64,000 nucleotides of DNA from sequence record MN871449.1. The stretch is one strand, 5' to 3'. The stretch's first letter is position 1. Every line of letters begins with the position of its first letter. Below, one piece after another: positions 4,464 through 58,164 of this stretch. Both the position numbers and the translations under genes were made by a program. The notes beneath the pieces are model-generated. The model had not been told where the DNA came from. It worked only from the letters and a program-made list of their open reading frames with translations, and did no database searches.

Positions 4464-4494
4464 GTCTTTTGCCTCTTAAAAAGAGTGGGTACCG

Positions 4495-4626: not shown

Positions 4627-5565
4627 ATGTTTAAACACAGTTTTGACACCTCAGCCGGCAGTTCTATTTTTCCTGCGAGTCTACCCGGGAAGATGTTGGT
4701 GGCGAACGCAGAAGGTGCATTAACCCCAATTAACCACTTTAAAGGGCTGTTCGCGGTACTGGAGAAAACCCCAGAATTGGAAGCCATTCCTGTCTTTCGT
4801 CATCCCCTTTCTCAAGAAGTTCAAAGTATACCGTATACATATATTGATCTTCGCCCTTACCGCGGGACGTTAAAATTAAATGCAGACGGCACCACAGACT
4901 TTGTTAATGAAGGTTCTGTCGGGATCATTTTCCGCCGTGCTGTTCTGGAGATGGCTTGGTCGGAAGGGAATATCGATGCGTTCTATTTCAACGTCGATGT
5001 CCCGTTGGCAATCTTTGCTAAGTGGTTAACTGGGCTGCTCAAAAACAAACTGAACCTGAATGAGCTGGTTGCAGAAAAACTCAAAGCAATCACTGCTTAT
5101 TATTACTACTGCTTACACTGCGATGCGAAAGACTTTAACGATCGTCGTCACGAGGTCTTCTGCGTGAAGATCAGTCGCATCCTGAATATCCCTTATCAGA
5201 AACTGGATTTGTGGTTGCGTCCGGTTGGCTACATGGCGAACCTCGATGACTATTGCAAAGCGTTAGCTGAATTCGGTGAGAGTTTATCACTGAAACGAAT
5301 TGACAAACGCATTCTCTGGACGTTGACATCAACTAGCTGGTTTGGTAGTTCAGAAGTCCGTGAGCAATTGGCCGTGGCGCTCGAATACCCGCCGATGTTT
5401 ATTGCCATGATTTATTCAGCGTGTGCCGGTGAAAAACAATACCGTAAAGCATGGTTAACGCAGTTGATTGACCGTGAAGGTCGTAATCTGAAAACCGACG
5501 ATTTCGTTGCTCGTGTTAACGACCTGATCGCATTGACGGCGAATCATCACGAGAAAACTTATTAA
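4627..5565 (+). CDS. Virion structural protein (phiKZ gp28 position)
   Basis: 312 aa; first of three genes between sheath and terminase, as in phiKZ-like phages. Confidence 0.6.
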   Translation: MFKHSFDTSAGSSIFPASLPGKMLVANAEGALTPINHFKGLFAVLEKTPELEAIPVFRHPLSQEVQSIPYTYIDLRPYRGTLKLNADGTTDFVNEGSVGIIFRRAVLEMAWSEGNIDAFYFNVDVPLAIFAKWLTGLLKNKLNLNELVAEKLKAITAYYYYCLHCDAKDFNDRRHEVFCVKISRILNIPYQKLDLWLRPVGYMANLDDYCKALAEFGESLSLKRIDKRILWTLTSTSWFGSSEVREQLAVALEYPPMFIAMIYSACAGEKQYRKAWLTQLIDREGRNLKTDDFVARVNDLIALTANHHEKTY

Positions 5566-5573
5566 AGTAGAAG

Positions 5574-8132: not shown

Positions 8133-8133
8133 A

Positions 8134-9843
8134 ATGACCACATCGACCACGAGTAGTGGGGTGCGTTACGCATTAGCGTTAACGGACAGTACGCCGTCTG
8201 ACGTCCCCATTTGGAACCCGAATGGATTATGGAAAGAATGGGACATGTCCGAGATCTATGTCGGACCAGCAGGGATTGGTAGCGGTAACAAAGGCCGGTT
8301 TGTGCCGAATGTTGGTAACCGTATCTTCGACAAAACTTCAGGTCTCTATATCGTTACCGAAGTCGATACCTCAACATTACTTTCTAAGTGGATTGCGTAC
8401 AATGTTCCTACTACGATTGATAACTCCATCGATATTCTGCTGGGAGTCGGTAGCCGTTACCCGCAACCTGGCTATTTCGTTTATGTCGACAATACCGTTT
8501 CACCACCGGAGATGGCATTCGACAGTTTAATGAGAGCCTATCAACCTACTGCGACTTACGTGCGAGTTTTCTCTAACATGTCCAGTACTGGTAACCTCGA
8601 AGTGCTTTCAGCGTATTACAATCAGTCCGGTGAACTCGAAAGCGATAAAATCCCTCTGATGACAATCGATGGGGATGGAACCGGTAATTACCGTATTCCC
8701 GTGACTGCCAACGCTACGCGTAAAATCACCAACGGTGAGACAGTCCTGGTGGTGTTCTACGACGCTGCGGGGTTACCGACGTCCCGTTTCACAATGACCG
8801 TTGTTGACTCTGGTATTATTCGTCAATCGAATTCAGCGAAACGTTCTATTGACTCGGTCGCCTTGGTCAGCAGTTACCTGTCGGCAACCGACCCTAACCG
8901 CCTGAATGTTCCGGTCAATCTTCTGATGACCTCCATCGATGTCAGCGCGAAGGTAACGTACACTGATGGCAGCTCGGTCATTAAACCGGTGGACGGCAGT
9001 AAGATCTACCTGTCTGGTTTAGCGGAGTTTATCCCGACGCAATCGGGTCAAAACAGCCCACTGACGCTTTTCTATCAGCTCGACACGACAGAGAGCTTTA
9101 AAGGGACAACGACAGCTTCTGGAACGATCACGGTTCCCTATACGATCGAAACTGTAACTTTACCGAATGCCTATGCGGTTAAACTCTTCATGTTCCCGGA
9201 ATGGCAGCGGAACGGTAACGGGTTTAAGCTCCGTCACTTTATGTATTCGCTCGATCGTCTGGCGATGTACGAAGTGACCGATATCGTCGAAGCGTCGCCG
9301 GGTTCGGCGGTTTGGGACCCTACGCTTTACAACACCAAACAGCACATGATATTTGCGCTTGATATTTCCAAAGTCTCTGCTTCGTTTGGCTCCTATCGAC
9401 ATGTACAGAGCAACGACATCACCCTGATGGCCAATGGTGAATCGGGCGTTGATAGTCCGTGGTACGTCAACTACGAACTGGGTGACGAAGACTACGGCGG
9501 ATCGTTAGAATGTCGTCTGAAATACATTTCGTCTCAGGTTTGGTCGACTGACCTTACCATGGGAGCCCAGACACAGAACGAATGGCTGGATCGGTTATAT
9601 TACCGTCTTCACCCGTTGTTTGACACTGAGACAGAAACGGAAGCGCCGATGCCGACGCACTTCATTCTTCAGGTGGATAACATTCGAGTCAGACAACCGA
9701 TCTCTGCCTGGAACACGACGTTTACCATTGCAACCGGTGGGCACGTAGGTGAATTGGCGCTCGTTCATTGGGTACGTTCAGTGAACGGGGTGGATTTACA
9801 ACTTGCGTCTTCCGGTTTGATCATACGTCAAACACTGAGTTAA
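8134..9843 (+). CDS. Virion structural/baseplate protein (phiKZ gp26 position)
   Basis: 569 aa, Thr/Ser/Val-rich, Ig-like segment (VSAKVTYTDGS); directly upstream of the terminase. Confidence 0.65.
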   Translation: MTTSTTSSGVRYALALTDSTPSDVPIWNPNGLWKEWDMSEIYVGPAGIGSGNKGRFVPNVGNRIFDKTSGLYIVTEVDTSTLLSKWIAYNVPTTIDNSIDILLGVGSRYPQPGYFVYVDNTVSPPEMAFDSLMRAYQPTATYVRVFSNMSSTGNLEVLSAYYNQSGELESDKIPLMTIDGDGTGNYRIPVTANATRKITNGETVLVVFYDAAGLPTSRFTMTVVDSGIIRQSNSAKRSIDSVALVSSYLSATDPNRLNVPVNLLMTSIDVSAKVTYTDGSSVIKPVDGSKIYLSGLAEFIPTQSGQNSPLTLFYQLDTTESFKGTTTASGTITVPYTIETVTLPNAYAVKLFMFPEWQRNGNGFKLRHFMYSLDRLAMYEVTDIVEASPGSAVWDPTLYNTKQHMIFALDISKVSASFGSYRHVQSNDITLMANGESGVDSPWYVNYELGDEDYGGSLECRLKYISSQVWSTDLTMGAQTQNEWLDRLYYRLHPLFDTETETEAPMPTHFILQVDNIRVRQPISAWNTTFTIATGGHVGELALVHWVRSVNGVDLQLASSGLIIRQTLS

Positions 9844-9857
9844 AAGTACAAACCCTT

Positions 9858-9887
9858 GGTACAGGAGGCTTAATGGCCTCCTGTACC
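9858..9887 (+). terminator. 12-bp hairpin without a clear U-tract
   Basis: GGTACAGGAGGC-TTAATG-GCCTCCTGTACC, followed by a TATG at 9899-9902 upstream of terL. Confidence 0.45.
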
Positions 9888-9934
9888 GCTATATTCCCTA
9901 TGATATTGTCTTTTCGTTGTCAGAGGGAAACTCT

Positions 9935-12109
9935 ATGACCTCCTCCATTATTCTAGAGAATGACTCGCGTCCTATTCTCCACCTTAGCGATTGGGATTAT
10001 CATCCCTCTGCTATCCCGGATTGGGATACGCCAAACAAAGAATTCCTACGTTTTGTTGGTGTCTTACAAAACATGGGAATTAAAAACCACCACTGGCCGA
10101 TTGCACTTTTAAACCCGGACCTTGTCGGTGTCGATCCTTTCAGTCCCGATCTGACTGAAGAACAGATGATCGCAATTAAGATCGAAGCGGAATATAACAT
10201 CTGGTATTATCTCAGAGAGTGTCTTCGCGTTCCGCCGGTTGTCGGTGAAGAAGGTGATCTTTTAAGAGCAAACCGCGCGAACATGTCTTTGATCTGGTCG
10301 TACATGAACCATATCGATTACCTGTTGATACAACCCCGTCAGACTGGTAAGTCACTTATCTCTTATTGTCTTTACTCCTGGCTGCTGTATATGCGATATA
10401 CAAAGGCCCGTATCTCACTCGTGACCAAATCAGACGAATTACGTTCTGAAACAACCACGATGATACGTCGTATCCGTGAATACTTGCCACCTTATCTGAC
10501 AGTAACAGACCGTTCAGACACGATTGCTAACGAGAAGGTGACCTATAACACCCGTGGTAACTTGTTTGCGGTAGCAGTATCTCGTTCTGACCCAGGTGGT
10601 GCGAATAAAGTTGGCCGTGGTAACACCTCGCCTACGGTAGGCTGGGATGAAACCCCCTTCATCAACTATATCGAAATTGCGTTTAAAGCAGCAATGCCCG
10701 GTATGAACGCCGCGATTCAAAAAGCGAAAGCGAGAAACATGCCCTGGGGCAGTATCATGACCACTACCGCGGGTGACCAAACGTCTCGCGATGGTCGCTT
10801 TGTTTTCAAAATGTGGAACGAAGCTGCTCGGTGGTCTGAGCACTTTTACGACGCAGGGAGTCAAGAAGAACTTCGTGAGATCGTTCAGCGCAATCTGAAA
10901 TCCTCTGATGCGAAACTCTTAATCAACGGAACGTGGAGTCACAACCAGGTTGGGGTCTCTGACGAACAGCATTACGAGAACATGCGTCGTGCTATGGCAC
11001 GTGGCCCAGAAGCAGATCGTGACTTCTTTAACATCTGGACCGCAGCGGGGACGAACAACCCGATTGATAAAGAGCTGTTAGCAAAAGCCATTGCCTCACA
11101 GCGTTATTCCGATTATTCCGAAATCTTCAGGAACGGTTACATTGTCCACTGGTATGTCTCCAAAGAATATCTGGATGCAAATCGTAAGACGATGACCTTT
11201 GTCATTGGGGCCGATACCTCAGAAGGCGGTGGACGAGATGCGCTGTCGTTGGTGTTCCTTGATCCTTATACTGCGGACGTTATCGGGATTTCAGTAATCA
11301 ACGAAGCACTGATTCCTAAATACGCTGAGTTCTTAGGTGATCTGTTAATTTCTTATCCTAAGGCTGTCTTCATCCCGGAACGTAAATCCACCGGACAAAC
11401 GTTTATTGATTACCTCTGTCTGATATTGCACAGCAAGGGAATTGATCCGTTCAAACGAATCTTTAACTTAATTGTCGATAATAAGTCAGTGGACACCGCG
11501 GCGTTCCTTGAGCTGCAGGGTGACATGAACCGTCGTGATGACGCATTCTATATTCGCCGTAAAACGAAGTTTGGTTTCTGCACGGGAACCACCACCCGAC
11601 GTCAGCTTTACGAAACCGTTCTGAAGATCGCCATGCAGAAAGGGGCTACACGTCTTCATGATAAAATTCTCATTGCGGAATTGACCGGGTTGGTCGAGAA
11701 GAACGGAAGAATTGACCATCCACCGGGTGGACATGACGATACCGTTATCGCCTACCTTCTGACCGTCTATCTGTTATTGTACGGATCGAACTTAGACTAT
11801 TACGGGTTAGATTCCAGAAGGGTATTGACGGGGGCAGTAGATGCGTTGGCAGGGAATGCGCAGGAAATTGACGAGCAGCAGGAAGAGATTGATTTCCTCC
11901 ATCGTGAAATTGAAAAGACATTGTCAGCCATCGAAAATGCCGATAATCCAATTATCACTATGAAGCTTGAGCGACGTCTCAATTACCTTAACGAGTGTTT
12001 ACAAGAGGCGGGTGCGGAACCGATTAACGTCGCAGGTAAGATCGAGGAGATGAACGCTAATCGTCACGCTGACTTCCAAAAATACATGGGGACGAATTTC
12101 TATAGGTAA
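9935..12109 (+). CDS. terL: Terminase large subunit
   Basis: Walker A IQPRQTGKS, Walker B VGWDE, coupling motif TTTAG, nuclease GADTSEG...D and HDD. Start moved to ATG 9935 (GAGGG upstream) from TTG 9917. Confidence 0.92.
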   Translation: MTSSIILENDSRPILHLSDWDYHPSAIPDWDTPNKEFLRFVGVLQNMGIKNHHWPIALLNPDLVGVDPFSPDLTEEQMIAIKIEAEYNIWYYLRECLRVPPVVGEEGDLLRANRANMSLIWSYMNHIDYLLIQPRQTGKSLISYCLYSWLLYMRYTKARISLVTKSDELRSETTTMIRRIREYLPPYLTVTDRSDTIANEKVTYNTRGNLFAVAVSRSDPGGANKVGRGNTSPTVGWDETPFINYIEIAFKAAMPGMNAAIQKAKARNMPWGSIMTTTAGDQTSRDGRFVFKMWNEAARWSEHFYDAGSQEELREIVQRNLKSSDAKLLINGTWSHNQVGVSDEQHYENMRRAMARGPEADRDFFNIWTAAGTNNPIDKELLAKAIASQRYSDYSEIFRNGYIVHWYVSKEYLDANRKTMTFVIGADTSEGGGRDALSLVFLDPYTADVIGISVINEALIPKYAEFLGDLLISYPKAVFIPERKSTGQTFIDYLCLILHSKGIDPFKRIFNLIVDNKSVDTAAFLELQGDMNRRDDAFYIRRKTKFGFCTGTTTRRQLYETVLKIAMQKGATRLHDKILIAELTGLVEKNGRIDHPPGGHDDTVIAYLLTVYLLLYGSNLDYYGLDSRRVLTGAVDALAGNAQEIDEQQEEIDFLHREIEKTLSAIENADNPIITMKLERRLNYLNECLQEAGAEPINVAGKIEEMNANRHADFQKYMGTNFYR

Positions 12110-12127
12110 TCGAAAACAATAGACGAA

Positions 12128-12144
12128 TATATCACTCTATTGAA
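12128..12144 (+). promoter_or_regulatory. Phage early promoter motif
   Basis: TATATCAC-TC-TATTGAA; identical to the copy at 46623; resembles the phiKZ early consensus TATATTAC. Confidence 0.7.
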
Positions 12145-12153
12145 ATACGCAAC

Positions 12154-12185
12154 AGAATGTCGGCGTTATTGCTGACATTCTTTTT
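12154..12185 (+). terminator. Terminator-like hairpin between the promoter motif and gene 12212
   Basis: AGAATGTCGGC-GTTATT-GCTGACATTCT (one G-U pair) then TTTT. Confidence 0.55.
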
Positions 12186-12211
12186 ATTATCCACACTAAA
12201 AGGAGAACGAC

Positions 12212-13258
12212 ATGGCAACGATAGAAACGTTTGTTTACAGTACCGTTTACGATAAGAAAACAGGGACTGATTTTCACTACGAAGGGGTTTTGGAGATCAG
12301 TAAAAAGGATCGTCTTTTTGGTTATCGTAACGAAAACGGATTTATCTTTACGGACAAGGACGACAATATTGTTTTACGGTTTAGCACTAACCCTACCTTA
12401 GAAATGAAACACCTTGTCTTCGTTACCGAAGGCGGCGATACTACGCGGTATCATTTCACTCAGGAAACGAAAAGCCCGTTTAGTTTCCTGGCGATCCAAC
12501 ACGCTTTCCAAGGGTTTATTGGTCAGAAAGCGCGAGCACGGTTTATGCTCAACTGTCGTTTTAAAATTCATGTCATGCAGCGGACGTTGTTGATGAATGG
12601 TCGCCCGATCGCAGTCGGAACTATGGCCGACGACAAGAGTACGTGGACCGGTGACTTTTACGGCCGTACCTGGCAGAAACAACTGGGTGAAGATTTTATC
12701 CTGTACATGCGGGAACACTTCGAATTAAGCTGGGCGCACAAAGTGGTTTGTCAACGCCGCGGTGAATACCAGTTTCTCCCGAACGTTGCCCTGTTCTTTG
12801 ACAGCACAACCGACCTTGTTCTAAAGCTGATTAATCGATCCAACGATAAAGACACCTGTGAAGGCTTCTACGTAGGGTCAATACTCGGTAAGGGGTTTGG
12901 TTACCATATCGACGGAAACGTCGAGAAAATCCCGCTGATTGATTCTTACATGCGAAAAGCAGTGGAAGATATCATCGGTTCACCGTTGAGCGAAGAAGAG
13001 TTTAAAACCGATCGCTTTATCACGGACGTCGAATACCGGGAAGATCAGGGGCGTTGGGTGTTAACTTCCAGCGTAGGTGATATTGCCTATATGGTGAAAG
13101 GCCCACGACCCGAGAACACCTGTGCGGTACGCAAACACGTCACCTGGAACTACAACGTCTTTGGACAGAGTATCGCTTCCATTCCGCTTCTGGAGAATCT
13201 TCTGATCGACGCATTCTATCGTGGTTATTGCCGACTGGCGAAACAAATCGGGTTATAA
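12212..13258 (+). CDS. Hypothetical protein (348 aa)
   Basis: AAGGAG ribosome-binding site, long ORF, ends at a terminator; no motif recognised. Confidence 0.8.
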   Translation: MATIETFVYSTVYDKKTGTDFHYEGVLEISKKDRLFGYRNENGFIFTDKDDNIVLRFSTNPTLEMKHLVFVTEGGDTTRYHFTQETKSPFSFLAIQHAFQGFIGQKARARFMLNCRFKIHVMQRTLLMNGRPIAVGTMADDKSTWTGDFYGRTWQKQLGEDFILYMREHFELSWAHKVVCQRRGEYQFLPNVALFFDSTTDLVLKLINRSNDKDTCEGFYVGSILGKGFGYHIDGNVEKIPLIDSYMRKAVEDIIGSPLSEEEFKTDRFITDVEYREDQGRWVLTSSVGDIAYMVKGPRPENTCAVRKHVTWNYNVFGQSIASIPLLENLLIDAFYRGYCRLAKQIGL

Positions 13259-13267
13259 CGAAAATAT

Positions 13268-13299
13268 AAAAAGAGAGGGTTACCCCTCTCTTTTTTTTT
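13268..13299. terminator. Bidirectional terminator
   Basis: AAAAAGAGAGGG-TTAC-CCCTCTC-T9 between convergent genes. Confidence 0.8.
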
Positions 13300-33236: not shown

Positions 33237-35138
33237 ATGGCCTTACGTGATGACGATCACAACAAAAACAAAGCAGAAGAAGCAGCAGTAGAAACTGGTG
33301 CGCAGGAAACTTCTCGCGACGAAGGTCGCCAGGAAGAATCCTCTGCACGCCGCCGTTCCTTTTACACCCGTTCCAACGAAAATGATTCCCGTCAGGAGAA
33401 AAAAGTGACTTCATCCTATAACTTCCGTAAAGATGCGCCAGTACTGTCCCTGAACTCTGCGGCAGGCGACGTAGCCAAATTCGTCGAACTGACCAAAGAA
33501 ATCCAGAAACAGCACAGCGCCGCGATCAGCCTGAACGGTGTCCTGGAATGGACGGTAACGCCGGCAACAGGCAAAGATACCCAAATGAAACTGGACGCTG
33601 CGGTCATCGCTGCCCGTCTGAAAGACAACGGCATGATCTTCGCGTCTACCGTGATCTTCGTGGGTAACACCGTGATGCCGAAACAGGCCGTGCAGGTTGG
33701 TCGTGACCACACCGTGCGTTTCACCACCACCGCAAACGACCAGTACGAAGCGATCGGCTATAAAGAGTCCCTGGACGATCTGATTGCCCTGTCCAACCCG
33801 GCATTCACCGGCCAGGTTCAGCATCTGGCGGCGTCCCCGATCTTCCTGGACAAACCGACCGACGCAGAACTGGAGCGTATCGCTTCTGCCGTGATCAACC
33901 AGATCATCTATTCCGTTAACGCGATCCTGACCACTAACGAGTTCAGCATTGCGGCGCTGGACCTGAAAAATAACGATCTGCTGGCGAACATCGCGTTCCA
34001 TCAAGGTGACGTTGCTGACGACATCACCGAAATGCCGCATCGCGCCGATATCGTTGTTGATCTGATGGTGGCGCCGCGTGACGAACGTCGTGGCGGTATT
34101 GTTAACGTATTGTCCGAGCGTGAGTCCACTCAGCTGGCCGGTCTGATCTCCCACGTCGACCTGTATTACAAAGGCGAAGAAGAGCAGTCCAACAGTTTCT
34201 TTGCACTGCGCAAAAAGAAAGCGGAAGACTTCGATACCCGTATCTACGGTATCGCTCTGGTGATCAGCGATCTGAAATGCGTGGCGATTCCTGAATACCT
34301 GATGTTCTCTCTGGCACAGGTATCTGCACTGATGACTGAACCGGCTCTGATTCAGGGTCTGCGTCCGCTGAACACCAAAGGCGCGCTGCGTACCGCTGAA
34401 GCTCTGACCTATGAACTGAAAGGCGAGTTTGAAAAACTCCCGGAAGTTCTGAACGACGACGAATGGGCTGGCCTGGTGGCTAACGTTGTTCGTGAGAACA
34501 GCCAGATCGTTCAGATCCAGATCCCGCGTTCTTCCATCAACACCCCGCTGCTGCAGCTGCTGGTTGATGCGTGCGACGAAACGAACCCGAACCGTAAAGA
34601 AGCTGTTGACGTGCTGATCGAAGCCGCCGACAACATCTCCGGCGATCGTTTCTCTACCATCATGAACACCTCAGATCTGTACGACGTGGGTATCATCCGC
34701 GACATGCCGCAACTGCTGGGCACCTGGATCGACGAACAGGGTCATAAACGTGACCTGCGTGAAATCGGTTACTACGAAATTCTGACCAACTTCGGTCTGA
34801 AATCTCCGCAGGTGGTTGCCGATTACGATCGTTGCCTGAACGACGATTCGATCGATCTGCAAGTCCGTATGGACCAGATGGAAAAAATCATCGAAGACTA
34901 CACCGGCGGTCAGTATCAGATCACCGACCGTGCAGACGTCATCGAAGTGAACGCCAACTGGCTGTTCGGCCTGACCCGCGCACTGTCTGCAGCAGGCATG
35001 GTGGTTACCGCTGATGGTATTACTCAGGATGGCCGTACCAGCCGTCGTGGTTATACCTCTCGTTACGAATCCAACGGCTATGACGGTGCAGGTTTCCGTT
35101 CTCGTGCCCGTTCTTCTTACGGTTTCGGCGGTCGTTAA
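33237..35138 (+). CDS. chmA: Chimallin, phage nuclear shell protein (phiKZ gp54-like)
   Basis: 633 aa, directly upstream of the nvRNAP beta-prime gene; extreme high-expression codon bias (CTG, CGT, AAC, TTC); disordered N-tail and G/R/Y/F-rich C-tail; own early promoter and terminator. Confidence 0.85.
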   Translation: MALRDDDHNKNKAEEAAVETGAQETSRDEGRQEESSARRRSFYTRSNENDSRQEKKVTSSYNFRKDAPVLSLNSAAGDVAKFVELTKEIQKQHSAAISLNGVLEWTVTPATGKDTQMKLDAAVIAARLKDNGMIFASTVIFVGNTVMPKQAVQVGRDHTVRFTTTANDQYEAIGYKESLDDLIALSNPAFTGQVQHLAASPIFLDKPTDAELERIASAVINQIIYSVNAILTTNEFSIAALDLKNNDLLANIAFHQGDVADDITEMPHRADIVVDLMVAPRDERRGGIVNVLSERESTQLAGLISHVDLYYKGEEEQSNSFFALRKKKAEDFDTRIYGIALVISDLKCVAIPEYLMFSLAQVSALMTEPALIQGLRPLNTKGALRTAEALTYELKGEFEKLPEVLNDDEWAGLVANVVRENSQIVQIQIPRSSINTPLLQLLVDACDETNPNRKEAVDVLIEAADNISGDRFSTIMNTSDLYDVGIIRDMPQLLGTWIDEQGHKRDLREIGYYEILTNFGLKSPQVVADYDRCLNDDSIDLQVRMDQMEKIIEDYTGGQYQITDRADVIEVNANWLFGLTRALSAAGMVVTADGITQDGRTSRRGYTSRYESNGYDGAGFRSRARSSYGFGGR

Positions 35139-37379: not shown

Positions 37380-37778
37380 ATGGCCACTGTACACCCCAGT
37401 TTAAACGGTCACGGTTATACGAAAAATCCTTTTGTGATTGCCGATGAATTATTCGCTTCCTCTATTTGGGCAAAGGACAGTCAGTCTGAACTGTATCACG
37501 GTCAAATCATTTCCCTTGACATGATGATACAAAGGTACTCGGATGACCCGAATAGCCTTTGTACGGAAATGACGGAACAATACACTACTTTATTCAGTAC
37601 GCATTTTTCCGACGTAAAAGTCCTGGTTACGCCTGAAATCGACGAGACAAAAGATACCTTCGGTGTAATCTTCAAAGTGCGTTTTACGCGAGAAGGGAAA
37701 AGTTACGACTTCTCACGAATTATTGAATATTACAACGGTGTGATTAAAAATGTTTTGGGGGTTTTAAATAATGACTGA
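37380..37778 (+). CDS. Conserved 132-aa protein, possibly a T4 gp25-like baseplate fold
   Basis: AGGAG RBS; helix-helix then C-terminal beta strands (VKVLV...FGVIFKVRF). Fold call is inference. Confidence 0.4.
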   Translation: MATVHPSLNGHGYTKNPFVIADELFASSIWAKDSQSELYHGQIISLDMMIQRYSDDPNSLCTEMTEQYTTLFSTHFSDVKVLVTPEIDETKDTFGVIFKVRFTREGKSYDFSRIIEYYNGVIKNVLGVLNND

Positions 37779-38328
37779 TGCAACGCCTAAGTTAACAAGA
37801 GAAGACCTGGAACGGGATCTGAGCGACGTTATGCAATATTCCGCAGAGATGATCAGTAAGCTCAGTATGCGGGATTTTGCAGCCAATTGGGCGCCGCGTT
37901 TCTTTAACACCGAACCAGCTGTCCAAACACAAGCGTTAGAGGAATGGGAGCGCCTGATTGCGTTTGGGCGGAATAAACCGGTTTTCCTCTTCGATGAGGA
38001 TAGAACGATTAAATGGGTTTTCCCGCCTATTCTCGGCGATTTCCAACCTCGTTACACCGGCGAACATAATTCGTTATTTTCCATCGGGATGGAGATAAAA
38101 ACGGTTATGAATCGGATGCGTAAACAGGGCGAAGCCATGAGCGAGAAAATCTACTCCTCACTCGCGCTTGAAACAGCCGATAAAGAAATGTGGCAACGTC
38201 ACCTCCACGAAATCAGGATGCACTGTGGTTATCCTTATCCTGGCCAAACGACAATAACGACAGGTAAAGGGAACGCTGCTCCTGTAACTCCCTCTTCACT
38301 GAGTCAACCGGACGATTATGATTTCTGA
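37771..38328 (+). CDS. Conserved hypothetical protein (185 aa)
   Basis: Overlaps both neighbours. Confidence 0.75.
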   Translation: MTDATPKLTREDLERDLSDVMQYSAEMISKLSMRDFAANWAPRFFNTEPAVQTQALEEWERLIAFGRNKPVFLFDEDRTIKWVFPPILGDFQPRYTGEHNSLFSIGMEIKTVMNRMRKQGEAMSEKIYSSLALETADKEMWQRHLHEIRMHCGYPYPGQTTITTGKGNAAPVTPSSLSQPDDYDF

Positions 38329-39439
38329 CAAAAAACTCACAATAGGTGCTGTCAGCGATATTCACTTCTTCCATAAGCGAACCAAATCCCCGCGAATGCT
38401 TGCGGGGTTAAGGCGACTTTACCCGATGGAAGAAAAACCCGATTTAGACATCCTCACGGTGTCAGGGGATTACTTCGATCATTTGGTCAGTTTCAATGAG
38501 CCCGATATATACTACGCAATTGAAGGTGTTCGTCATCTCTTGCGCTATTGTAAAAAATGGAACATTTTACTCCGTGTATTAGAAGGGACCAACTCTCATG
38601 ACCGTCGACAGAATCAGATTTTCGATTTTATCAACGACGGCGAGGGGATTGACGCGCAACTGAAATACGTTGATACGTTGAGTATCGAATATTTTGAGGC
38701 GTGGGATATCAACGTACTTTACCTTCCCGATGAATGGACTCATAACGCGGAACTAACGCTCCAGCAGGTTAAGGATTTGATTCATTCTCGCGGGCTGGAA
38801 AAAGTCGATATCGCTATTGTTCATGGGGGCTGTACTTATCAGTTGCCTGGGATTCATTCCCCTGCGTTACACGATGCGGTGAAATGGAGTGATCTTGTCT
38901 CCCTGGTCGTTCTCTCTGGGCATATCCATAACCACAGTCGGTATCTGAAATGGGTCTCTGTAGGCTCATTGGAGCGACTTGGTCATGGGGAAGAAGAACC
39001 TAAAGGTGTGATCGAACTGACGTTCTTAAACGGGAAAGAGGTCGACTTTAAACGCCGGATTAATCAGCAGGCGAAAATATATCGTACGCTTTCTGCTATC
39101 GGTTTAGATTTCCCGGAAATTATCGATCTCATCGACAGGCAGAGTGATCTTCCGAAAGGCTCGGCGATAAGATTAGAATTTATGTCCGATGACCCGGTGA
39201 CGGCGTGGATGGAAATTCTTAAATCTACTTTCCCTGATTATGAACTCAGTGAGATCAGAAGAGGGAAGAAAACCCAAACGGTGGCGGGGAGCACGTTCAC
39301 TCAGAAACGTTTTGAGTTTACTCCTATCACGCCGTCAAGTATTCAACCTCTGTTCAAACAGCGCTGGGAGAACGAACAAATCCCGGCAAGTAAAATTGAA
39401 AAGACGCTTTCGTTATTGAATGAATTAATTGAGGAATAA
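38318..39439 (+). CDS. sbcD: SbcD/Mre11-like metallophosphoesterase nuclease
   Basis: SDIH, GDYFD, EGTNSHD, IVHG, GHIH and GSLER motifs. Confidence 0.85.
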   Translation: MISDKKLTIGAVSDIHFFHKRTKSPRMLAGLRRLYPMEEKPDLDILTVSGDYFDHLVSFNEPDIYYAIEGVRHLLRYCKKWNILLRVLEGTNSHDRRQNQIFDFINDGEGIDAQLKYVDTLSIEYFEAWDINVLYLPDEWTHNAELTLQQVKDLIHSRGLEKVDIAIVHGGCTYQLPGIHSPALHDAVKWSDLVSLVVLSGHIHNHSRYLKWVSVGSLERLGHGEEEPKGVIELTFLNGKEVDFKRRINQQAKIYRTLSAIGLDFPEIIDLIDRQSDLPKGSAIRLEFMSDDPVTAWMEILKSTFPDYELSEIRRGKKTQTVAGSTFTQKRFEFTPITPSSIQPLFKQRWENEQIPASKIEKTLSLLNELIEE

Positions 39440-39440
39440 G

Positions 39441-39665
39441 ATGGATAAGCCGGCGACGAACATTATTCTGGAGATTATTGCGGCATCAGGATTTTGGTTT
39501 TTATTTTGGTTTATGTCCTCTTTCGCCAGTCTCTTTCACCCTAATGACTACAACGTTCCCGCTCATGCGACATTAGCGTTGTTCGCATTGATTTTGGCCC
39601 GGGTCATCTATGCGATTTTAAGCTCGGTGACCAAAAGTAAGAACGTCGACCAAGGAGCAGAATGA
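39441..39665 (+). CDS. Small two-TM membrane protein (74 aa)
   Basis: GAGGA RBS; hydrophobic runs IILEIIAASGFWFLFWFMSSFASLF and ATLALFALILARVIYAIL. Confidence 0.65.
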   Translation: MDKPATNIILEIIAASGFWFLFWFMSSFASLFHPNDYNVPAHATLALFALILARVIYAILSSVTKSKNVDQGAE

Positions 39666-40507
39666 ATATCTACGACATCCTTGCGAGAAGAGCGGTAGGG
39701 GAACTACCGCTCAGCATCGGTACCAGTTTGGCTATGGAGACCCTTGAACCAAACAAACGTTACGGAGGGCTCTGGATCAACACACGGACGCTTTATCGTA
39801 ACATCTACGATGCGTTAGACGGTGAAGACAGAAAAGCGCTTGTAGGGTCTCTGATGCAGGATAAAAGCCAGCGTAATAATCAGGTGGTGGTCGCAGCATT
39901 TGCCGATACCCTCGAAGAAGAGCTCCATCAAATTCTTCAGTACGGGCAAGGGAAACTTGACAAAGTTACCTTATATCACCGTGAATACGCCAACTTGTTA
40001 CGAGACTATCGTCACGCGATTTTGTTTAACCCGAAGACTCCGCTTCAGAAAACGTTTCGTCATTTAATGGACAATGTTATCGATGAGGTTTTACGTCGAC
40101 CTATCGGACGCTATGTCGACTTTGATAAAGGCTCTCAATTAAAAGGGGAACCCATCAAAGCTCTGATCATGACTCATTACTCCATTGACTTACTTTCCCG
40201 TACTGAGTTTACGCAATTACGTTTGATTGAATCGTATTCAGGTGCGATCAAATCGAAGAGTCAGTGGAACACCAAATTGACGGATGGAAAGCTCTACCCG
40301 AGGATTCCGTTTAACGCGTTCACGATTCAGGTCTTCGGTGACCGAAATATTCTTTTTATGCGTTACCCCAAACCGGTGAGGGAGGCTGTTCTTGAATTGT
40401 CAGAACGTTTCAAATGGACAACGATGACAACGATGGACAAAATAAGGCTCAACCTGAACTGGATGAACGACCGCTACACTGCTGAGATGCTAAAAAGACT
40501 TTTCTAA
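39662..40507 (+). CDS. Conserved chimallivirus protein (281 aa), function unknown
   Basis: ATGA overlap; lies in the nvRNAP/nucleus gene block. Confidence 0.75.
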   Translation: MNIYDILARRAVGELPLSIGTSLAMETLEPNKRYGGLWINTRTLYRNIYDALDGEDRKALVGSLMQDKSQRNNQVVVAAFADTLEEELHQILQYGQGKLDKVTLYHREYANLLRDYRHAILFNPKTPLQKTFRHLMDNVIDEVLRRPIGRYVDFDKGSQLKGEPIKALIMTHYSIDLLSRTEFTQLRLIESYSGAIKSKSQWNTKLTDGKLYPRIPFNAFTIQVFGDRNILFMRYPKPVREAVLELSERFKWTTMTTMDKIRLNLNWMNDRYTAEMLKRLF

Positions 40508-40577
40508 GAGTCTCAGTTTTTACGCGAGGGTGAGTTAATACGATACCCTTTTCTTAACCGTGAAATTAAGGCTAGTT

Positions 40578-41396
40578 ATGGCTAACAACAATACATTTGA
40601 TCTCGGACGTCCTCTTCGCGCGATGGATGCTTGGGACTGCCGTTTGAGCGCGCCCGCAACACAAAGCAGTGACGGTAAAGAGCCGTTTCTGTTCGTCGAT
40701 TTCCGTTACCACAAAGTTGACGGTAATCACGTTAAAGTCCGTGATATCAAAATGGGCGTGAACCTGCGTAAACAAGGTCGTGACGGGAAAATCGATTTCT
40801 ACCCTTCGTTGACGCAGTTCAGAATGATCACAATAGCAATCGAAGACATTGCTTCGGGTCGCGCGCTGGATGAGAATGGGCAGCCGCTTTCGATCGTTAA
40901 ACTTGAAAGCATGACTACTTTCATGTTCGGCAAAAAGCTCGATCGCCCTGAAACCGAAGTCATGGTTGTTGTAGGTAAAGACCAGGAAGGCGTTTTCATT
41001 GGTCTGATGATGAAAGGGCGCGATAACGTGAAGTTCTACTTCACTCCGCCGAAGATGACGCAGCTGCGTCTTTCTTCCGGTGAAGTCCTGACTAACGGTT
41101 ATGTTTCCTCTCTGGCGGCCCGTGCTCGTGCAGACATCTGGTGGGATCACGTTAACAGCATTCTGAAAGCGGGTTATATGTCTGACCAAGAAGTTCAAGA
41201 AGCGAAAGACCGTAACCGTCAGCAGAACCAGCAGAACTTTGCTAAACGTCAAGGCGGTAACGGCGGGGGGAACTGGAACAACAATTCCGGTGGTGGTAAC
41301 GGCGGTAATAGTTGGGGTGGCGGCAACCAAGCGTCTTCTCAACCTGCAGCACCTGCGGCGCCGCAAGGCACTTTTGATAACGACGTTCCTTGGTAA
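40578..41396 (+). CDS. chmC: ChmC, nucleus-associated nucleic-acid-binding protein (phiKZ gp67 position)
   Basis: Directly upstream of the gp68-like subunit; beta-rich core plus a long Q/N/G-rich disordered tail, as described for ChmC. Confidence 0.7.
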   Translation: MANNNTFDLGRPLRAMDAWDCRLSAPATQSSDGKEPFLFVDFRYHKVDGNHVKVRDIKMGVNLRKQGRDGKIDFYPSLTQFRMITIAIEDIASGRALDENGQPLSIVKLESMTTFMFGKKLDRPETEVMVVVGKDQEGVFIGLMMKGRDNVKFYFTPPKMTQLRLSSGEVLTNGYVSSLAARARADIWWDHVNSILKAGYMSDQEVQEAKDRNRQQNQQNFAKRQGGNGGGNWNNNSGGGNGGNSWGGGNQASSQPAAPAAPQGTFDNDVPW

Positions 41397-41405: not shown

Positions 41406-41431
41406 CCGAGCGAGTCGTGAGACTCGCTCGG
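41406..41431 (+). terminator. Hairpin after chmC
   Basis: CCGAGCGAGTC-GTGA-GACTCGCTCGG (GNRA loop), interrupted U-tract. Confidence 0.6.
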
Positions 41432-41450
41432 TTCCATTTGTTTTCGTGCA

Positions 41451-41490: not shown

Positions 41491-43032
41491 ATGCAATTTT
41501 ATTTTGATGAAAGTTTAGGTGGTCGAGCAAAAACACGTGTACTCTGTATGAGTCACGGGGAATACGACACGCTCTTTTGGGAGATGAAGAAATTAACCTG
41601 GAACGAAACAACGTTTCGTGACATTAATCGATTCTTCTCTTATCTCGAAGAAGACATTCAGGAAAAGGTCTTCTTAGTTTATCGTAATATTCGTGATAAA
41701 CTGGACAATGCGTACGAATTCAATACCACGAGTAAAATGGTCAACGAGGACATCATTGAACTTTATCAGTTCTTGCCGTTAGCCTTGATCGATCACTGGA
41801 TGCGTCACTACAGCGATATCCGTTTACCCCCAGATTTGAAAACGTCTTTGCTGGAAGATGATCGTCCAGAGCAAACGTATCTGGAACCGGATTATCGTCA
41901 ACTGACCGTGATGTCGATTGCTCTGAAAGCAATGGTGCCGATCTGGAGTGAGTTCTTGGCGTTGGAATCCGCAATGGCAGAATCCAACAAAGAGATCTAC
42001 GCGCAACAGCTTTTACGTCGAACTGAAATCTATGAATCACAGGCGATGGAACGTTTCCGTGAGTTCGTAGATGCGGTGGTTTCGGGGACGACACCGGGGA
42101 TGAAGAATATCATCTTTGGGATCGGTTCAGCGGATATTCCCGAATGGATGTTGGCGTATCTCGTGGTGAGTCGGTTGTCAGTGATTCAGTTGAGTCATGA
42201 TGATGACGATGATCAAGTCGAAACCGTTAACCTGATCAGTAAGATGTGGAGCGCGATCAAAACGCAGCTTCCAAGTGACGGCGGACGGAGCGGCAAAGAT
42301 GACGTCAGACCAAAAACCATGGTCAAAGACTCAGGCGGGGAAGAAGATAACCTGTCTACGGCGGAAAGTTATAAAGTCAGGGAAAGTATTTCTGACGGCG
42401 AACGTATCGCGTTTGACTATTGGGCGAAAGAACTGCGGGCGAAAGCCAGTCGTATTCTCGGTGATGACTACGACCAAGCGTTACTTTTCTCGGTGATTGC
42501 GCGTAATAAGTCCAGGAAGTTTTTCAACCCGAACGAAGCGCAACTGAAGTTGGTAGCGGTGACGTTACATCAACAGGTTGTTACGCGTTCTATTCCGCAT
42601 ACGGAGCGCAGCGGAGCGATTGATCTGATCTCTATTGCGCAGGTCTATCTTTATCAAAACGGGTTCGCGGCGCTGGCGGACTTGATTGGTGCTACGCAGA
42701 AAGAAAGAATCCAAAATATCTTCAATGCAGGACAAATCAAAGAGGAGCAACTGAATGTCTTCAATGAAATTTATCCATATCGACGCTATTCAACTTTAGG
42801 GTCTGCCCGCTCTAAAGCCATGCTAAAAACTCCCGGCGAAATCGCCGTTAACGCCTTCTATAATGAATTTGCGAACAACTATTGGCAACGCGATGTCGTT
42901 GCTGAGATTGCAAACGAAAGTACGATGATTGAAGATAATCATCGCGGATTAATGGTACCGCCTAACTTTAAACAGTTACTGGCTGAGTTCATTATCTTCA
43001 TTAAGACGCGTTCTACCATTGCTAAACCTTAA
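41491..43032 (+). CDS. Non-virion RNAP promoter-specificity (sigma-like) subunit (phiKZ gp68-like)
   Basis: 513 aa, helical; size and position between chmC and picA. Confidence 0.7.
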   Translation: MQFYFDESLGGRAKTRVLCMSHGEYDTLFWEMKKLTWNETTFRDINRFFSYLEEDIQEKVFLVYRNIRDKLDNAYEFNTTSKMVNEDIIELYQFLPLALIDHWMRHYSDIRLPPDLKTSLLEDDRPEQTYLEPDYRQLTVMSIALKAMVPIWSEFLALESAMAESNKEIYAQQLLRRTEIYESQAMERFREFVDAVVSGTTPGMKNIIFGIGSADIPEWMLAYLVVSRLSVIQLSHDDDDDQVETVNLISKMWSAIKTQLPSDGGRSGKDDVRPKTMVKDSGGEEDNLSTAESYKVRESISDGERIAFDYWAKELRAKASRILGDDYDQALLFSVIARNKSRKFFNPNEAQLKLVAVTLHQQVVTRSIPHTERSGAIDLISIAQVYLYQNGFAALADLIGATQKERIQNIFNAGQIKEEQLNVFNEIYPYRRYSTLGSARSKAMLKTPGEIAVNAFYNEFANNYWQRDVVAEIANESTMIEDNHRGLMVPPNFKQLLAEFIIFIKTRSTIAKP

Positions 43033-43060: not shown

Positions 43061-44584
43061 ATGAAACCGACTGTAATTAGTGCATTCTTCTTCACCACTT
43101 CTAATTACGATGACCAATACGGTAGCTCATTCACGACTCATTTCGACAATGGCGTGAAAGACCGTCTTGTCAAAGCAACCGATCGCGGCAGAAACATCAA
43201 CTCGATTTCGTTATCAGCAGCTGTTAACGATGCGATCAGCATGACTGCAAAACGCGGTTCGATTATTGATATCCCCGGGGGTTGGGGTGAGAAACGTTTG
43301 AGTTTCATTATCACGTTCCTGATCTCTGACTATGCTGGATCTACCCAACGTCAGGTACTGACCGGGTTCACCGATTATAACGGCGTCAGCATGGTCAGCG
43401 GTGAACTGGATGACCAAATGGATCTCTTCATCAATAACTCCATCATCATCCGTGACACCGTTCTCGATACGGGCCGTGGCCGTATTCTGCGTCCACGAAT
43501 TGAATCCTCTGAGTACGTTATCCGTGGTCGGGGCCGTAACGAAGGCCAACGTGGTCTTCGCCGTGACCGTGGCGAGCGTTTAATTCGTCCGCACGATATC
43601 TTCAATGACGTAGGTATCCAAGATTATCAGCGTTACCATTCTGGCGGCGATCAGATTATCGATACCCGTGCTGATCTGGTGGGCGATATCAAGATGGGTT
43701 CTCGTCGTGAAAATAATGCGGCGGATTACATCTCGACGGTATTGAAGGCGGGTGTACTGGCGGAGACAATGGAGCAGCCGAGCTGGAACCCCGACTCTGC
43801 GTTAGCAGGGGAAGAGATGTCAAAATCGGAACTGGCGGCAGGAGCAGTTAACCTGAGCAAAACAGAAGATAACCCACTCTTTGCACAGTTCCTGCAAGAA
43901 TGCGACTTCTATCAAGAAGGCGTCATTCGCCTCGAAGACTTAGCGCGGATGGTAGATTGGCCAGAGACTTATCGTGGTCAGCCCGTCACGCAGTTTATCA
44001 ATCCGAAACAGGTCGAAGAGCGTGGTTATAAAAGCTATGAACGTGGACGTGGGAACAACCTCGGCGGTGCAGGTGTTGATGCAGTAGCCGTTCGTATCAT
44101 CTCTCAAGCCGTACCTTCTATCCTGATGACCAACCACATCTCTGATGCCATGATCGCTTTCAGTAATGATAACGATATCGGAGAAATGCAGGTTGAGGTC
44201 TGGGGTGAACGTCCGTTGATTCCGGGTTCGAACGTCTCGGGCGCGGTGAACGCGGTTCGTCAGTTGATTGAGTATCAAGTAGCGAAACCCGTTTCCCATA
44301 ACGGTCAGATGATCGTTACCTGTACGATCGACTGTTCTGCAATCACGGACATTAAAATCAATCTGTCGTTAGACGGCCAACCGGAAGAACTTTACGTTAT
44401 TCCAATGTATTGCGATGGTCTTATCTCACCGCAGAAAACTGATGACTACGATCTGGCATCTAAGATCGTCACTGACTTGCAAAGTACGATCACCGAATTG
44501 GCAGACAGTCAATTCTCCATGGAAGAAAACCGTATCGATGACGCGTTGACTGGTTTCAGTTGGGGCGGGAACGGCCGTTTTTAA
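43061..44584 (+). CDS. picA: PicA/Imp1 nuclear protein-import factor (phiKZ gp69-like)
   Basis: 507 aa directly downstream of the gp68-like gene; GGW.E.R...F...F and LTGFTDY segments; assignment mainly by synteny. Confidence 0.7.
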   Translation: MKPTVISAFFFTTSNYDDQYGSSFTTHFDNGVKDRLVKATDRGRNINSISLSAAVNDAISMTAKRGSIIDIPGGWGEKRLSFIITFLISDYAGSTQRQVLTGFTDYNGVSMVSGELDDQMDLFINNSIIIRDTVLDTGRGRILRPRIESSEYVIRGRGRNEGQRGLRRDRGERLIRPHDIFNDVGIQDYQRYHSGGDQIIDTRADLVGDIKMGSRRENNAADYISTVLKAGVLAETMEQPSWNPDSALAGEEMSKSELAAGAVNLSKTEDNPLFAQFLQECDFYQEGVIRLEDLARMVDWPETYRGQPVTQFINPKQVEERGYKSYERGRGNNLGGAGVDAVAVRIISQAVPSILMTNHISDAMIAFSNDNDIGEMQVEVWGERPLIPGSNVSGAVNAVRQLIEYQVAKPVSHNGQMIVTCTIDCSAITDIKINLSLDGQPEELYVIPMYCDGLISPQKTDDYDLASKIVTDLQSTITELADSQFSMEENRIDDALTGFSWGGNGRF

Positions 44585-44612: not shown

Positions 44613-45866
44613 ATGAACAAGAAAAAGTTGACTACGATCTATCGCGAGATTCTTACCGCGTTAGGTTTTGAGGTGGATGAGAAGGGCGGCGTCTATTTCG
44701 AAGCATTGGGCGTCAGAGCACCTTTCACCATGAACAAACGTCAGTTGGTTATTCCGACCGACGAATGGCTGAAAAATCCGGATTGGGAAAATACTATCCC
44801 GTTCCACCCGCTATCCGAAAACACCCAACGGAAAAAGTCCGAAGTACTGGAACGGTTGACGCTCTGTGTTTGTAACCGACTCTATCAGGTTGGGGCAACG
44901 ATGATCTGTTTCCTGACCGAACTGGCCGCGGACACAGATCGCCATGCAAAACTGACGCCGGAGCAACGCGACTATCTTCGCCTCTTACCGGAAGCCGATA
45001 AACGTACGGTTGAAGATACCCGTAAACTGATGATGTCGAAGTTGACCTTTAAAGGCGATAACGCGTTTATCAACATATTCATCAAACGTGGCGGCGTATG
45101 GAAAGGCGAAGAGTATTCTCGCGTGGCGGTAACCACCTTCCCGATTGCGGACCAGGAGAATAACGAAGATAAGAAAATCTTCGATGTCACCTTCCGCGTT
45201 CGTGACCGTGCAGCGCTGTTTAACCTGCTCCGTCACATCTTCCCTAATTTCGATAAATCGATTGACGAATACAGCTATGGTAGTCGTTCATCGGTCGCGC
45301 CGAATTTCCATTCGCTGATGATGGCGTTTGCAAATCTGGCGTTTGATCTGAATAAGGTCACGAAAGTATTCCAGGAAGACTTTGAAGAAATGAAAGGTCT
45401 GTTGATCGGAACGAATTGGGTTAAGAACATGGCGGAGCTGACGGAGTATCGTAATGACATTCCGCCGCTGGAAGGTAACGAAGGCGAAGCGAACGAAGAC
45501 GAGCTGGCGAAGCCTAAGGCTAAAGCGGAAAACCGCGAACGTATTCGTGAAGAACGCGAACAACGTCGTGAAGTTTCCTCTGGCCGTCGGCAAGTACTTC
45601 GTTCAACAGATGAGCGTCGTGATGAACCGCGGAGTTTAATCGGCGGAAGTCGTAACGATCGTCGTTACGAAGATGATCGCCGGGGCGGTGGCTTACTGCG
45701 TCGTGTTTCTCATGACGACCGGGACGATCGTGATTACGATGAGGATCGTCGTGGTTCACGTCCTCGTTCATTACTCGACCGTTACGATGATCGTGACTAC
45801 GACCGTCGCGGAAGCGGATTCGGAGAACGAAGTGCATTTGGTTCCCGCAACCGTTTCCGTCGTTAA
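44613..45866 (+). CDS. Conserved nucleus-block protein (phiKZ gp70 position) with an Arg/Asp/Glu-rich disordered tail
   Basis: 417 aa; roughly the last 110 aa are RE/RD/RG-rich low complexity. Confidence 0.7.
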   Translation: MNKKKLTTIYREILTALGFEVDEKGGVYFEALGVRAPFTMNKRQLVIPTDEWLKNPDWENTIPFHPLSENTQRKKSEVLERLTLCVCNRLYQVGATMICFLTELAADTDRHAKLTPEQRDYLRLLPEADKRTVEDTRKLMMSKLTFKGDNAFINIFIKRGGVWKGEEYSRVAVTTFPIADQENNEDKKIFDVTFRVRDRAALFNLLRHIFPNFDKSIDEYSYGSRSSVAPNFHSLMMAFANLAFDLNKVTKVFQEDFEEMKGLLIGTNWVKNMAELTEYRNDIPPLEGNEGEANEDELAKPKAKAENRERIREEREQRREVSSGRRQVLRSTDERRDEPRSLIGGSRNDRRYEDDRRGGGLLRRVSHDDRDDRDYDEDRRGSRPRSLLDRYDDRDYDRRGSGFGERSAFGSRNRFRR

Positions 45867-58134: not shown

Positions 58135-58164
58135 AATGAATATCTTACCGGAAAGGGAAAAGAA

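Follow-up and report, generated by a model that had tools for sequence, protein, structure and literature searches.

Which task falls to the extreme C-terminus of the protein encoded at positions 40578–41396 of a 64,000-nucleotide stretch of MN871449.1 (the window, by which the whole of this stretch is meant), where an acidic peptide, FDNDVPW, resembles the tip of SSB, the bacterial protein that binds single-stranded DNA? A Klebsiella/Serratia jumbo phage of ~300 kb, one of the KpLz/KpYy group, is the source of the window, and MN871451.1 (302 kb), whose aligned pieces are 97.4–99.6% identical to it, served as the comparison genome. The open reading frame (ORF) is an ortholog of ChmC/Imp6 of the nucleus-forming phages (chimalliviruses). 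We hypothesize, with a probability of roughly 0.5, that its tip works in the manner of the SSB C-terminal tip (SSB-Ct), as a docking and self-regulating peptide, here borne by a single-strand binder that is not of the oligonucleotide/oligosaccharide-binding (OB) fold, and that its partners are most likely phage-encoded. The gene and the parts of its product are the following.

40578–41396, + strand: the chmC/imp6 gene, from ATG at 40578 to the TAA stop at 41394–41396, 272 amino acids
40608–41177, + strand: predicted Whirly/PUR-like single-strand nucleic-acid-binding domain, approximately residues 11–200 (AlphaFold2, AF2, model)
41184–41255, + strand: predicted helix, residues 203–226, with the basic/Q-rich segment KDRNRQQNQQNFAKRQ (DSSP on the AF2 model; predicted local distance difference test score, pLDDT, falling from 81 to 55)
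Residues 213–225: tail segment NRQQNQQNFAKRQ, from the sequence
41253–41327, + strand: N/G-rich disordered linker with two W, residues 226–250, GGNGGGNWNNNSGGGNGGNSWGGGN (pLDDT 30–34)
41340–41366, + strand: P/A spacer QPAAPAAPQ, residues 255–263, from the sequence
41373–41393, + strand: C-terminal tip FDNDVPW, residues 266–272, preceded by GT and followed by the stop, from the sequence

The name ChmC had been given to the protein by an earlier sequence-only reading of this DNA, and it is borne out by gene order, profile homology and a Whirly/PUR-like fold. A domain profile free of tail residues (A2) gave hhalign probabilities of 98.4% with PhiPA3 gp61 (E 5e-15) and of 97.8% with Goslar gp176 (E 1e-12), with about 23–27% identity between the window protein and the PhiPA3, Goslar and phiKZ proteins over the hhalign-aligned domain. 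The window protein also matched the unannotated family PHROG 3284 (E 1e-47), and searches of Pfam, NCBIfam and PDB sequences with the protein or the domain profile gave nothing useful, with no Pfam family at E ≤0.1. The gene order SbcD-like, gp66-like, ChmC, non-virion RNA polymerase (nvRNAP) subunit, PicA/Imp1 is identical in PhiPA3 (gp59–63), Goslar (gp178–174) and a phiKZ-like phage, and recurs in four metagenomic loci (L004, L005, L006 and L009), two of which adjoin chimallin; the metagenomic and phage members are one chimallivirus core family. With PhiPA3 gp61, Goslar gp176 and phiKZ gp67 the window protein has in common an orthologous gene, fold, synteny and tail layout, while it belongs to a Klebsiella/Serratia clade apart from theirs. 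Ten GenBank records encode it at 98.5–100% identity. The longest ORF call opens at GTG 40560; the start was set at ATG 40578 instead, because all homologs begin at the corresponding MA. In one record, PQ182779.1, an identical gene is labelled ‘attachment protein’, probably a mis-annotation, and the other records call it hypothetical.

The AF2 model has a mean pLDDT of 77.6, with residues 21–210 at 83–97 and the tail at 30–43. Its domain is closest in structure to Trypanosoma brucei MRP1/MRP2 (Z 7.8 over 138 residues), human PURA (Z 6.0–6.9) and SsgB (Z 5.4), values that are moderate, yet above the unrelated rows of the comparison (Z ≤4.1); the same Whirly/PUR group comprises the fold relatives published for ChmC (PMC11077065). 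The likeness is one of structure and not of sequence: the Whirly Pfam model PF08536 was not matched by the window protein, while 13% of the members of one Atlas neighbour cluster carry that model. No OB fold was detected in the domain by Pfam or NCBIfam, the fold being Whirly-like. T. brucei MRP1/MRP2, human PURA, plant Whirly proteins and SsgB are, as ChmC is, tetrameric binders of single-stranded RNA or DNA, and we know of no protein in this superfamily with an SSB-Ct-type tip.

The tail reads as had been described, with a Q/N/G-rich linker, a P/A-rich spacer and GTFDNDVPW before the stop. FDNDVPW is the only acidic-x-acidic-hydrophobic-Pro-aromatic end among the 692 stop-to-stop segments of the window and the single match to the tip motif in its 127,706-residue six-frame translation. 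ChmC is likewise the only one of the 741 ORFs of MN871451.1 with an end of this type, no second protein with such a tip being found among them.

Conservation of the tip across ChmC homologs had been named as a check on the SSB comparison, and the tip is conserved family-wide. Profile A2 was searched against 1.84 billion representatives, which gave 786 clusters at E ≤1e-3, and the C-termini of the best 150 of these, at ≤50% identity, were compared by counting positions from the end; because the profile held no tail residues, the conservation of the tip is independent of how the family was collected. Position −1 is F in 86 members, W in 22, M in 16, L in 8 and Y in 4; P occupies −2 in 113; and −3 holds I in 58, L in 45, F in 21 and M in 7 (131 together). 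Further inward, D stands at −4 in 117 and at −5 in 101 (E in another 23), with D at −6 in 84 and F at −7 in 49. The resulting consensus is F-D-D-D-[I/L]-P-[F/W/M], and 11 of the 150 end exactly in DDDIPF. The last eight residues are 37% D/E and contain no K or R in 144 members, following a linker with 9% K/R. The linkers themselves (60% G/N/Q/S) are not alignable, their composition drifting gradually to S/D/G toward the tip, and in the folded core of the same 150 proteins only three positions are ≥90% conserved, so that the best-conserved stretch of the fold is no more constrained than the tip. A strict form of the motif occurs in 105 of the 150 members against 1 of the 741 MN871451.1 ORFs, and a lenient form in 130 of 150 against 12 of 357; most exceptions are a tip with one extra residue (IPWN, LPWD, IPWG, FPFH). 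A separate word-indexed search gave 21–22 homologs, among which the tip persists down to 20–29% identity, with D269 invariant and D267 and P271 at least 90% conserved, and in which the linker is indel-rich and not alignable. The P/A spacer, present in the window protein and its close relatives, was rejected as a family feature and is clade-specific, a comparable A/P-rich stretch being found in only 27 of the 150 representatives.

Some members depart from the usual layout. P0069 has two tandem tips (FDEDMPAW...EGDDFPM), and in P0043 (466 amino acids) and P0139 (404 amino acids) the domain profile matched in two stretches each; the latter two may be duplicated or fused forms.

The comparison with bacterial SSB was made with the E. 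coli K-12 protein, whose end was read from the genome record (...QQSAPAAPSNEPPMDFDDDIPF, tip EPPMDFDDDIPF). Set against its FDDDIPF, the window tip FDNDVPW has N for D at −5, V for I at −3 and W for F at −1, whereas the ChmC family consensus FDDD[IL]PF is the E. coli tip itself (DFDDDIPF). The claim that ChmC has the SSB layout was sustained as well: a disordered low-complexity linker leads to an acidic hydrophobic-Pro-aromatic tip at the free C-terminus, and the family consensus equals SSB-Ct. In a scan of the 150 members that covered the whole of NCBIfam (18,950 models), those for full-length SSB had both the most members matched and the best score (PRK06958 with 9 members, PRK06341 with 3, PRK09010 with 2 at a best E of 2.6e-6, and PRK06461 with 1), aligning to ChmC through their tail portion, for example over model positions 119–177 of 177. 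Two other families were matched by more than one member, at best E values of 0.024 (NEAT_IsdX2, 5 members) and 0.034 (Xaa-Pro dipeptidase, 2), and the remaining 18 had single matches at E ≥0.004. When every ORF of MN871451.1 was searched by phmmer with E. coli SSB, ChmC alone was returned, through its tail (E 5e-4), and no ORF matched the OB domain, although a single SSB query is insensitive to OB folds that have diverged and a further SSB may exist. In BLASTP the window tail and E. coli SSB share 13 of 31 residues (E 8e-6, for a single comparison), pairing QPAAPAAPQ with SAPAAPS and including FD.D.P. The resemblance is thus a property of the family, stronger across it than in the window protein, whose copy of the tip is, judging by its residues, slightly derived.

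Could a low-complexity tail produce such a likeness by chance or by composition? The window tail lies below significance against the SSB models, only about one in ten members reach those models at E ≤0.1, and the tail by itself gave nothing informative in an Atlas search (scores of 0.52–0.66, with an SSB-fragment cluster only among the weak named neighbours). Position-specific conservation at the extreme C-terminus over 150 clusters, while the rest of the tail drifts, already contradicts this explanation, as do the uniqueness of the motif among 741 ORFs and the lead of the SSB models over other NCBIfam families in both members and score; we regard it as extremely improbable.

In both bacterial SSB and ChmC, a G/Q/N/P-rich low-complexity tether of ~40–60 residues extends from a homotetrameric single-strand binder to an acidic tip ending hydrophobic-Pro-aromatic-COOH, and in both the tail is required for condensates. 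The two differ in their cores (Whirly/PUR-like instead of OB fold), in the preference of ChmC for RNA, and in a linker that is N-rich in most ChmC members and Q/P-rich in SSB. The condensates of E. coli SSB are driven by the linker together with SSB-Ct, which also recruits RNase HI to forks and touches neighbouring SSB tetramers (PMC11253446). ChmC itself has been studied in three phages. The PhiPA3 protein is a homotetramer that binds single-stranded RNA with a Kd of 58 nM and single-stranded DNA (ssDNA) cooperatively with a Kd of 184 nM (Hill coefficient 2.4), and crosslinking (eCLIP) places it on phage mRNAs (PMC11077065). Its authors (Enustun et al.) divide the tail into an N/G-rich region and, after it, an ‘electronegative cluster’ rich in S/D/E, and make no mention of SSB; deletion of residues 204–251, that is, of linker and tip, left tetramers and RNA binding intact and abolished condensates and shell localization (PMC11077065). 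Goslar ChmC without its tail supported nucleus growth and did not rescue titre. The phiKZ protein gp67 received the name Imp6 for its stable, direct complex with the import factor Imp1/PicA (10.1101/2024.03.27.586873); it had no disruptive transposon insertions, which its authors took as a sign of essentiality, and ChmC is essential in Goslar too. In the ChmC/Imp6 and jumbo-phage literature examined, the SSB likeness of ChmC is not mentioned, and no phage paper combining ChmC and SSB was found; the gene is thus already known, while the SSB-Ct nature of its terminus is apparently undescribed, as far as the literature search goes.

These published properties bear on a second question, whether ChmC is itself the replicative and recombination SSB that chimalliviruses seem to lack. 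A Whirly-fold protein would then have displaced the OB-fold SSB and kept or captured the SSB tail, and inside the nucleus the tip would serve to organize the replisome and the recombination enzymes of the phage on ssDNA, with mRNA binding as a secondary activity or by-product. A survey of viral replication genes detected none among the phiKZ-like phages and raised the idea of non-orthologous displacement (PMC4889955), an SSB goes unmentioned in a 2026 account of the replication toolkit of chimalliviruses, and in MN871451.1 E. coli SSB finds nothing but the ChmC tail. The tetrameric state of PhiPA3 ChmC, its place among the most abundant early proteins and its cooperativity on ssDNA fit an SSB; so do the proximity labelling of ChmC from the recombinase UvsX, its presence together with both DNA polymerase subunits in pull-downs of Goslar GFP-Rhc (an RNase H-clamp DNA polymerase subunit; PMC13648698), the smaller nuclei with less DNA after ChmC knock-down in Goslar, and the location of the gene in a conserved block with DNA polymerase and SbcD. 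The roughly 3-fold higher affinity for RNA and the mRNA crosslinks point the other way, as does the location of PhiPA3 ChmC at the shell and in the cytoplasm. Nucleus growth with tail-less Goslar ChmC is also hard to square with an SSB-Ct hub, which would be expected to be necessary, although residual wild-type protein is a caveat, and the phmmer search may have passed over another, divergent SSB. We consider a replicative and recombination SSB of this kind doubtful, although the missing SSB lends the idea genuine support. We entertain, as a tentative possibility, a broader role in which ChmC would be the long-missing SSB of nucleus-forming phages, its complete SSB tail either retained or acquired from an ssb gene of a bacterium or phage, and would by SSB-Ct-type docking couple replication, recombination and R-loop processing (through the Rhc–DNA polymerase complex and UvsX) to mRNA handling and PicA import at the shell.

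In the docking hypothesis, the starting point is the anatomy of ChmC, which combines a Whirly-fold core that binds single-stranded nucleic acid with a long, disordered N/G/Q-rich tether and an acidic-hydrophobic tip with a free carboxylate. The tetramer would thus present four flexible tethers, each with a tip having a fixed Pro and a terminal aromatic carboxylate, and this last aromatic residue and its carboxylate would plug into a pocket on partner proteins. Docking would raise the concentration of these partners on single strands that ChmC coats (nascent mRNA, R-loops, ssDNA) and in the condensates that ChmC forms at the nuclear shell or inside it. A tip with no partner bound would fold back on the basic nucleic-acid-binding face and tune binding and condensation, a likely secondary role. 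Docking, like the identity of the partners, is inferred: this anatomy is the solution by which SSB brings partners to coated single strands, and a fixed Pro at −2 with an aromatic last residue speaks for a peptide that binds in a pocket and not simply for negative charge. Candidate partners are PicA/Imp1, since it is the only proven direct binder of ChmC/Imp6, and the Rhc–DNA polymerase complex, nvRNAP, ChmB and UvsX, because of pull-downs and proximity labelling: PhiPA3 ChmC pulled down ChmB, nvRNAP gp62 and the virion RNA polymerase protein gp77, in addition to the UvsX and Rhc results above. All of these are phage-encoded, and such partners appear likelier than host SSB clients. Imp1 binding, the loss of localization on tail deletion, the unrescued Goslar titre and the Rhc pull-downs are all compatible with a docking or hub role.

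If self-regulation were the whole function, the tip, like the acidic tails of Hfq, T4 gp32, T7 gp2.5 and SSB, would be an acidic mimic of nucleic acid that lies on the basic Whirly surface for solubility and RNA selectivity and meets no external partner. The strongly acidic, nearly K/R-free last eight residues behind a more basic linker suit this idea, and an electronegative cluster is how Enustun et al. interpreted the region (PMC11077065). Acidic C-terminal tips autoregulate the RNA chaperone Hfq (PMC5606850), and SSB-Ct contacts neighbouring SSB tetramers. Charge alone, however, does not explain the near-fixed Pro at −2, the hydrophobic residue at −3 and the terminal aromatic residue or Met in 130 of 150 members; tail deletion retained RNA binding, with no gain in affinity reported; and the loss of shell localization on that deletion points to an external contact. 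Regulation with no partner at all is therefore, in our estimate, unlikely.

The identity of the partners may also be sought in the variation of the tip among phages. Klebsiella/Serratia phages end in PW, PhiEaH1, PCH45 and SPLA10 in PF, Goslar in FDGLAF and Pseudomonas phages in P-x-F, and the window tip, with D-V-P-W, is closer to SSB-Ct than are PhiPA3 EIPNF, phiKZ-like DMPSF and Goslar FDGLAF. Phages of Enterobacterales, whose hosts to our knowledge share one invariant SSB tip, show PW, PF, PM, P-x-F and GLAF endings. On a 168-tip domain tree the terminal residue (F, W, M or other) requires about 50 changes, against about 65–75 in ten of 200 shuffles; this suggests some clade signal with frequent switching and is not decisive for any partner. 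That the tip fails to reproduce the host one faithfully, and that its last residue switches, favours phage-encoded receptors.

The sequence-only reading, which is supported in part, had proposed that the tip may recruit host or phage SSB-partner enzymes to the phage nucleus or that ChmC doubles as the phage SSB; recruitment of host enzymes for import is the least supported part of that interpretation. In its general form, the tip would mimic host SSB to capture its clients (RecQ, ExoI, PriA, chi, RNase HI, Topo III), either for delivery to the nucleus or as a takeover or anti-defence decoy. Such mimicry would account for the many family members that end exactly in DFDDDIPF, for one (P0027) whose EPPMDFDQDIPF is identical to E. 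coli SSB EPPMDFDDDIPF at 11 of 12 residues, and for the GGWGKPQQ of enterobacterial-phage linkers, where SSB has GGWGQPQQ; ChmC is moreover abundant, partly cytoplasmic and complexed with the import factor Imp1. Yet the tips vary among phages whose hosts, as far as we know, have a common SSB tip, and ChmC pull-downs reported ribosomal proteins and RNA polymerase, with no host SSB clients. TopA is the sole host protein reported in the nucleus, its import has been mapped to Imp1, Imp3, Imp4 and Imp5, not to gp67 (10.1101/2024.03.27.586873), and import reportedly proceeds via folded surfaces rather than terminal signals. Capture of host clients is, on this evidence, very unlikely.

Several observations weigh against docking by an SSB-Ct-like tip. 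The window protein itself reached no SSB model in NCBIfam. Some members bury or extend the tip, at odds with any strict requirement that the carboxylate be free; examples are P0027 (DFDQDIPF and 16 further residues), extensions by one residue such as IPWN and LPWD, P-x-F in phiKZ and PhiPA3, and FDGLAF in Goslar. In the AF2 monomer the tip has low confidence (pLDDT ~43–50) and is not docked on the core, so that no fold-back is predicted, a result that counts neither for nor against fold-back. The published ChmC deletions all take linker and tip together, and an AF2 screen that paired phiKZ Rhc with each of the phiKZ proteins did not list gp67.

How the tail arose was considered at the nucleotide level. 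Recent DNA transfer from E. coli ssb was rejected, the window gene having no meaningful nucleotide match to it. Even P0027, the most SSB-like homolog, shares only 28 of 35 nucleotides with ssb over the tip, with mostly third-position or synonymous differences, and so offers no sign that capture was recent; an ssb tail captured long ago and a convergent one look alike in these data. Both P0027 (L009:6001–6807) and L010, two independent contigs, carry an internal SSB-like tip, ...AAAEPPMDFDQDIPF, followed by the 16 residues APIGLQYGKMSLYALA. The linkers of enterobacterial-phage ChmC proteins carry GGWG/PQQ units, as in the GGWGKPQQ of the Erwinia phage PhiEaH1 (L018) beside the GGWGQPQQ of E. 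coli SSB (L008), and those of Pseudomonas phages are N/G/Y-rich; the composition of the tail may follow the host group.

Acidic tails on nucleic-acid binders have precedents. The phage single-strand binders T7 gp2.5, with its terminal Phe, and T4 gp32 have acidic C-termini that both contact partners in the replisome and compete for the cleft in which DNA binds. Unlike ChmC, these are OB-fold proteins and are not known to have the D-D-D-I-P-F consensus or a long N/G linker. Hfq is an RNA chaperone that shares with ChmC a disordered tail and an acidic tip; the Hfq tip autoregulates RNA binding (PMC5606850) and is the model for the self-regulation reading. Unlike ChmC, Hfq has the Sm fold and neither a conserved Pro-aromatic terminus nor known tip docking.

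ChmC/Imp6 is essential and abundant, and in the phage nucleus mRNA export, protein import and replication all meet at it. Reading its conserved last seven residues as an SSB-Ct-type peptide offers a cheap and concrete handle on it, in that a peptide of 7–10 residues and point mutants could identify partners and distinguish what the tip contributes from what the linker does in forming condensates. The SSB-type tail is also a candidate answer to why phiKZ-like phages show no SSB. If ChmC is indeed the missing SSB, one tail chemistry would organize nucleic-acid transactions in the bacterial cell and the phage nucleus alike; we know of no earlier case of a bacterial SSB tail on a non-OB, RNA-preferring protein.

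The genomic context of chmC in the window consists of these features, the chimallin gene and a divergent B-family polymerase lying upstream of the chmC block.

33237–35138, + strand: chimallin (ChmA), marker of a nucleus-forming phage (Pfam PF25677, E 3e-21)
38318–39439, + strand: SbcD/Mre11-like phosphoesterase, phiKZ gp65-like (PHROG 100, E 2e-37)
39662–40507, + strand: conserved upstream neighbour, phiKZ gp66-like (PHROG 3229, E 3e-71), its position kept in all loci examined
41406–41441, + strand: terminator-like hairpin and T-rich tail, with an 11 bp stem including 8 G-C pairs, 10 nt past the chmC stop
41491–43032, + strand: nvRNAP subunit, ortholog of phiKZ gp68 and PhiPA3 gp62 (tblastn)
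43061–44584, + strand: PicA/Imp1 ortholog (BLASTP to PhiPA3 gp63, E 2e-20, full length), its gene position kept

The SbcD-like gene also matched Pfam Metallophos at E 1e-3, its 20 bits falling under the curated cut-off of 21.5 bits. The tblastn matches of 41491–43032 were to PhiPA3 062, to the position of Goslar gp175 and to a record annotated as an nvRNAP subunit. The hairpin proper spans 41406–41431 and was rated strong; together with the spacer of ~95 nt between the chmC stop and the nvRNAP gene, it would be compatible with separate, high expression of chmC. An antisense ORF at 40572–41366 (− strand, 264 amino acids) covers nearly all of chmC; its R/C/T-rich, low-complexity translation is without support, and it is most likely a by-product of chmC codon composition.

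The window spans the ends of the linear record MN871451.1, window positions 1–13299 corresponding to 289141–302439 of the record and those from 13291 onward to the record from position 1, so that the start of the record is arbitrary or the genome is permuted. MN871451.1 also holds ~369 bp (44861–45228) that are absent from the window near 58142–58150.

Two further ORFs accompany the chmC block. At 39429–39665 (+ strand, TTG start, 78 amino acids), between the SbcD-like and gp66-like genes, lies a very hydrophobic protein with two predicted membrane-like segments, and the same slot holds small ORFs in L004 (48 amino acids) and L005 (76 amino acids). Directly upstream of the SbcD-like gene, the ORF at 37771–38328 (+ strand, 185 amino acids) has a disordered-looking stretch and then an acidic/aromatic end, ...SSLSQPDDYDF. 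Its positional counterparts in further chimallivirus loci have the endings VEGFDDF, EEEELYDDE, GGGMDYD and NSDFVYD, which may represent a second conserved tail motif in the chmC block.

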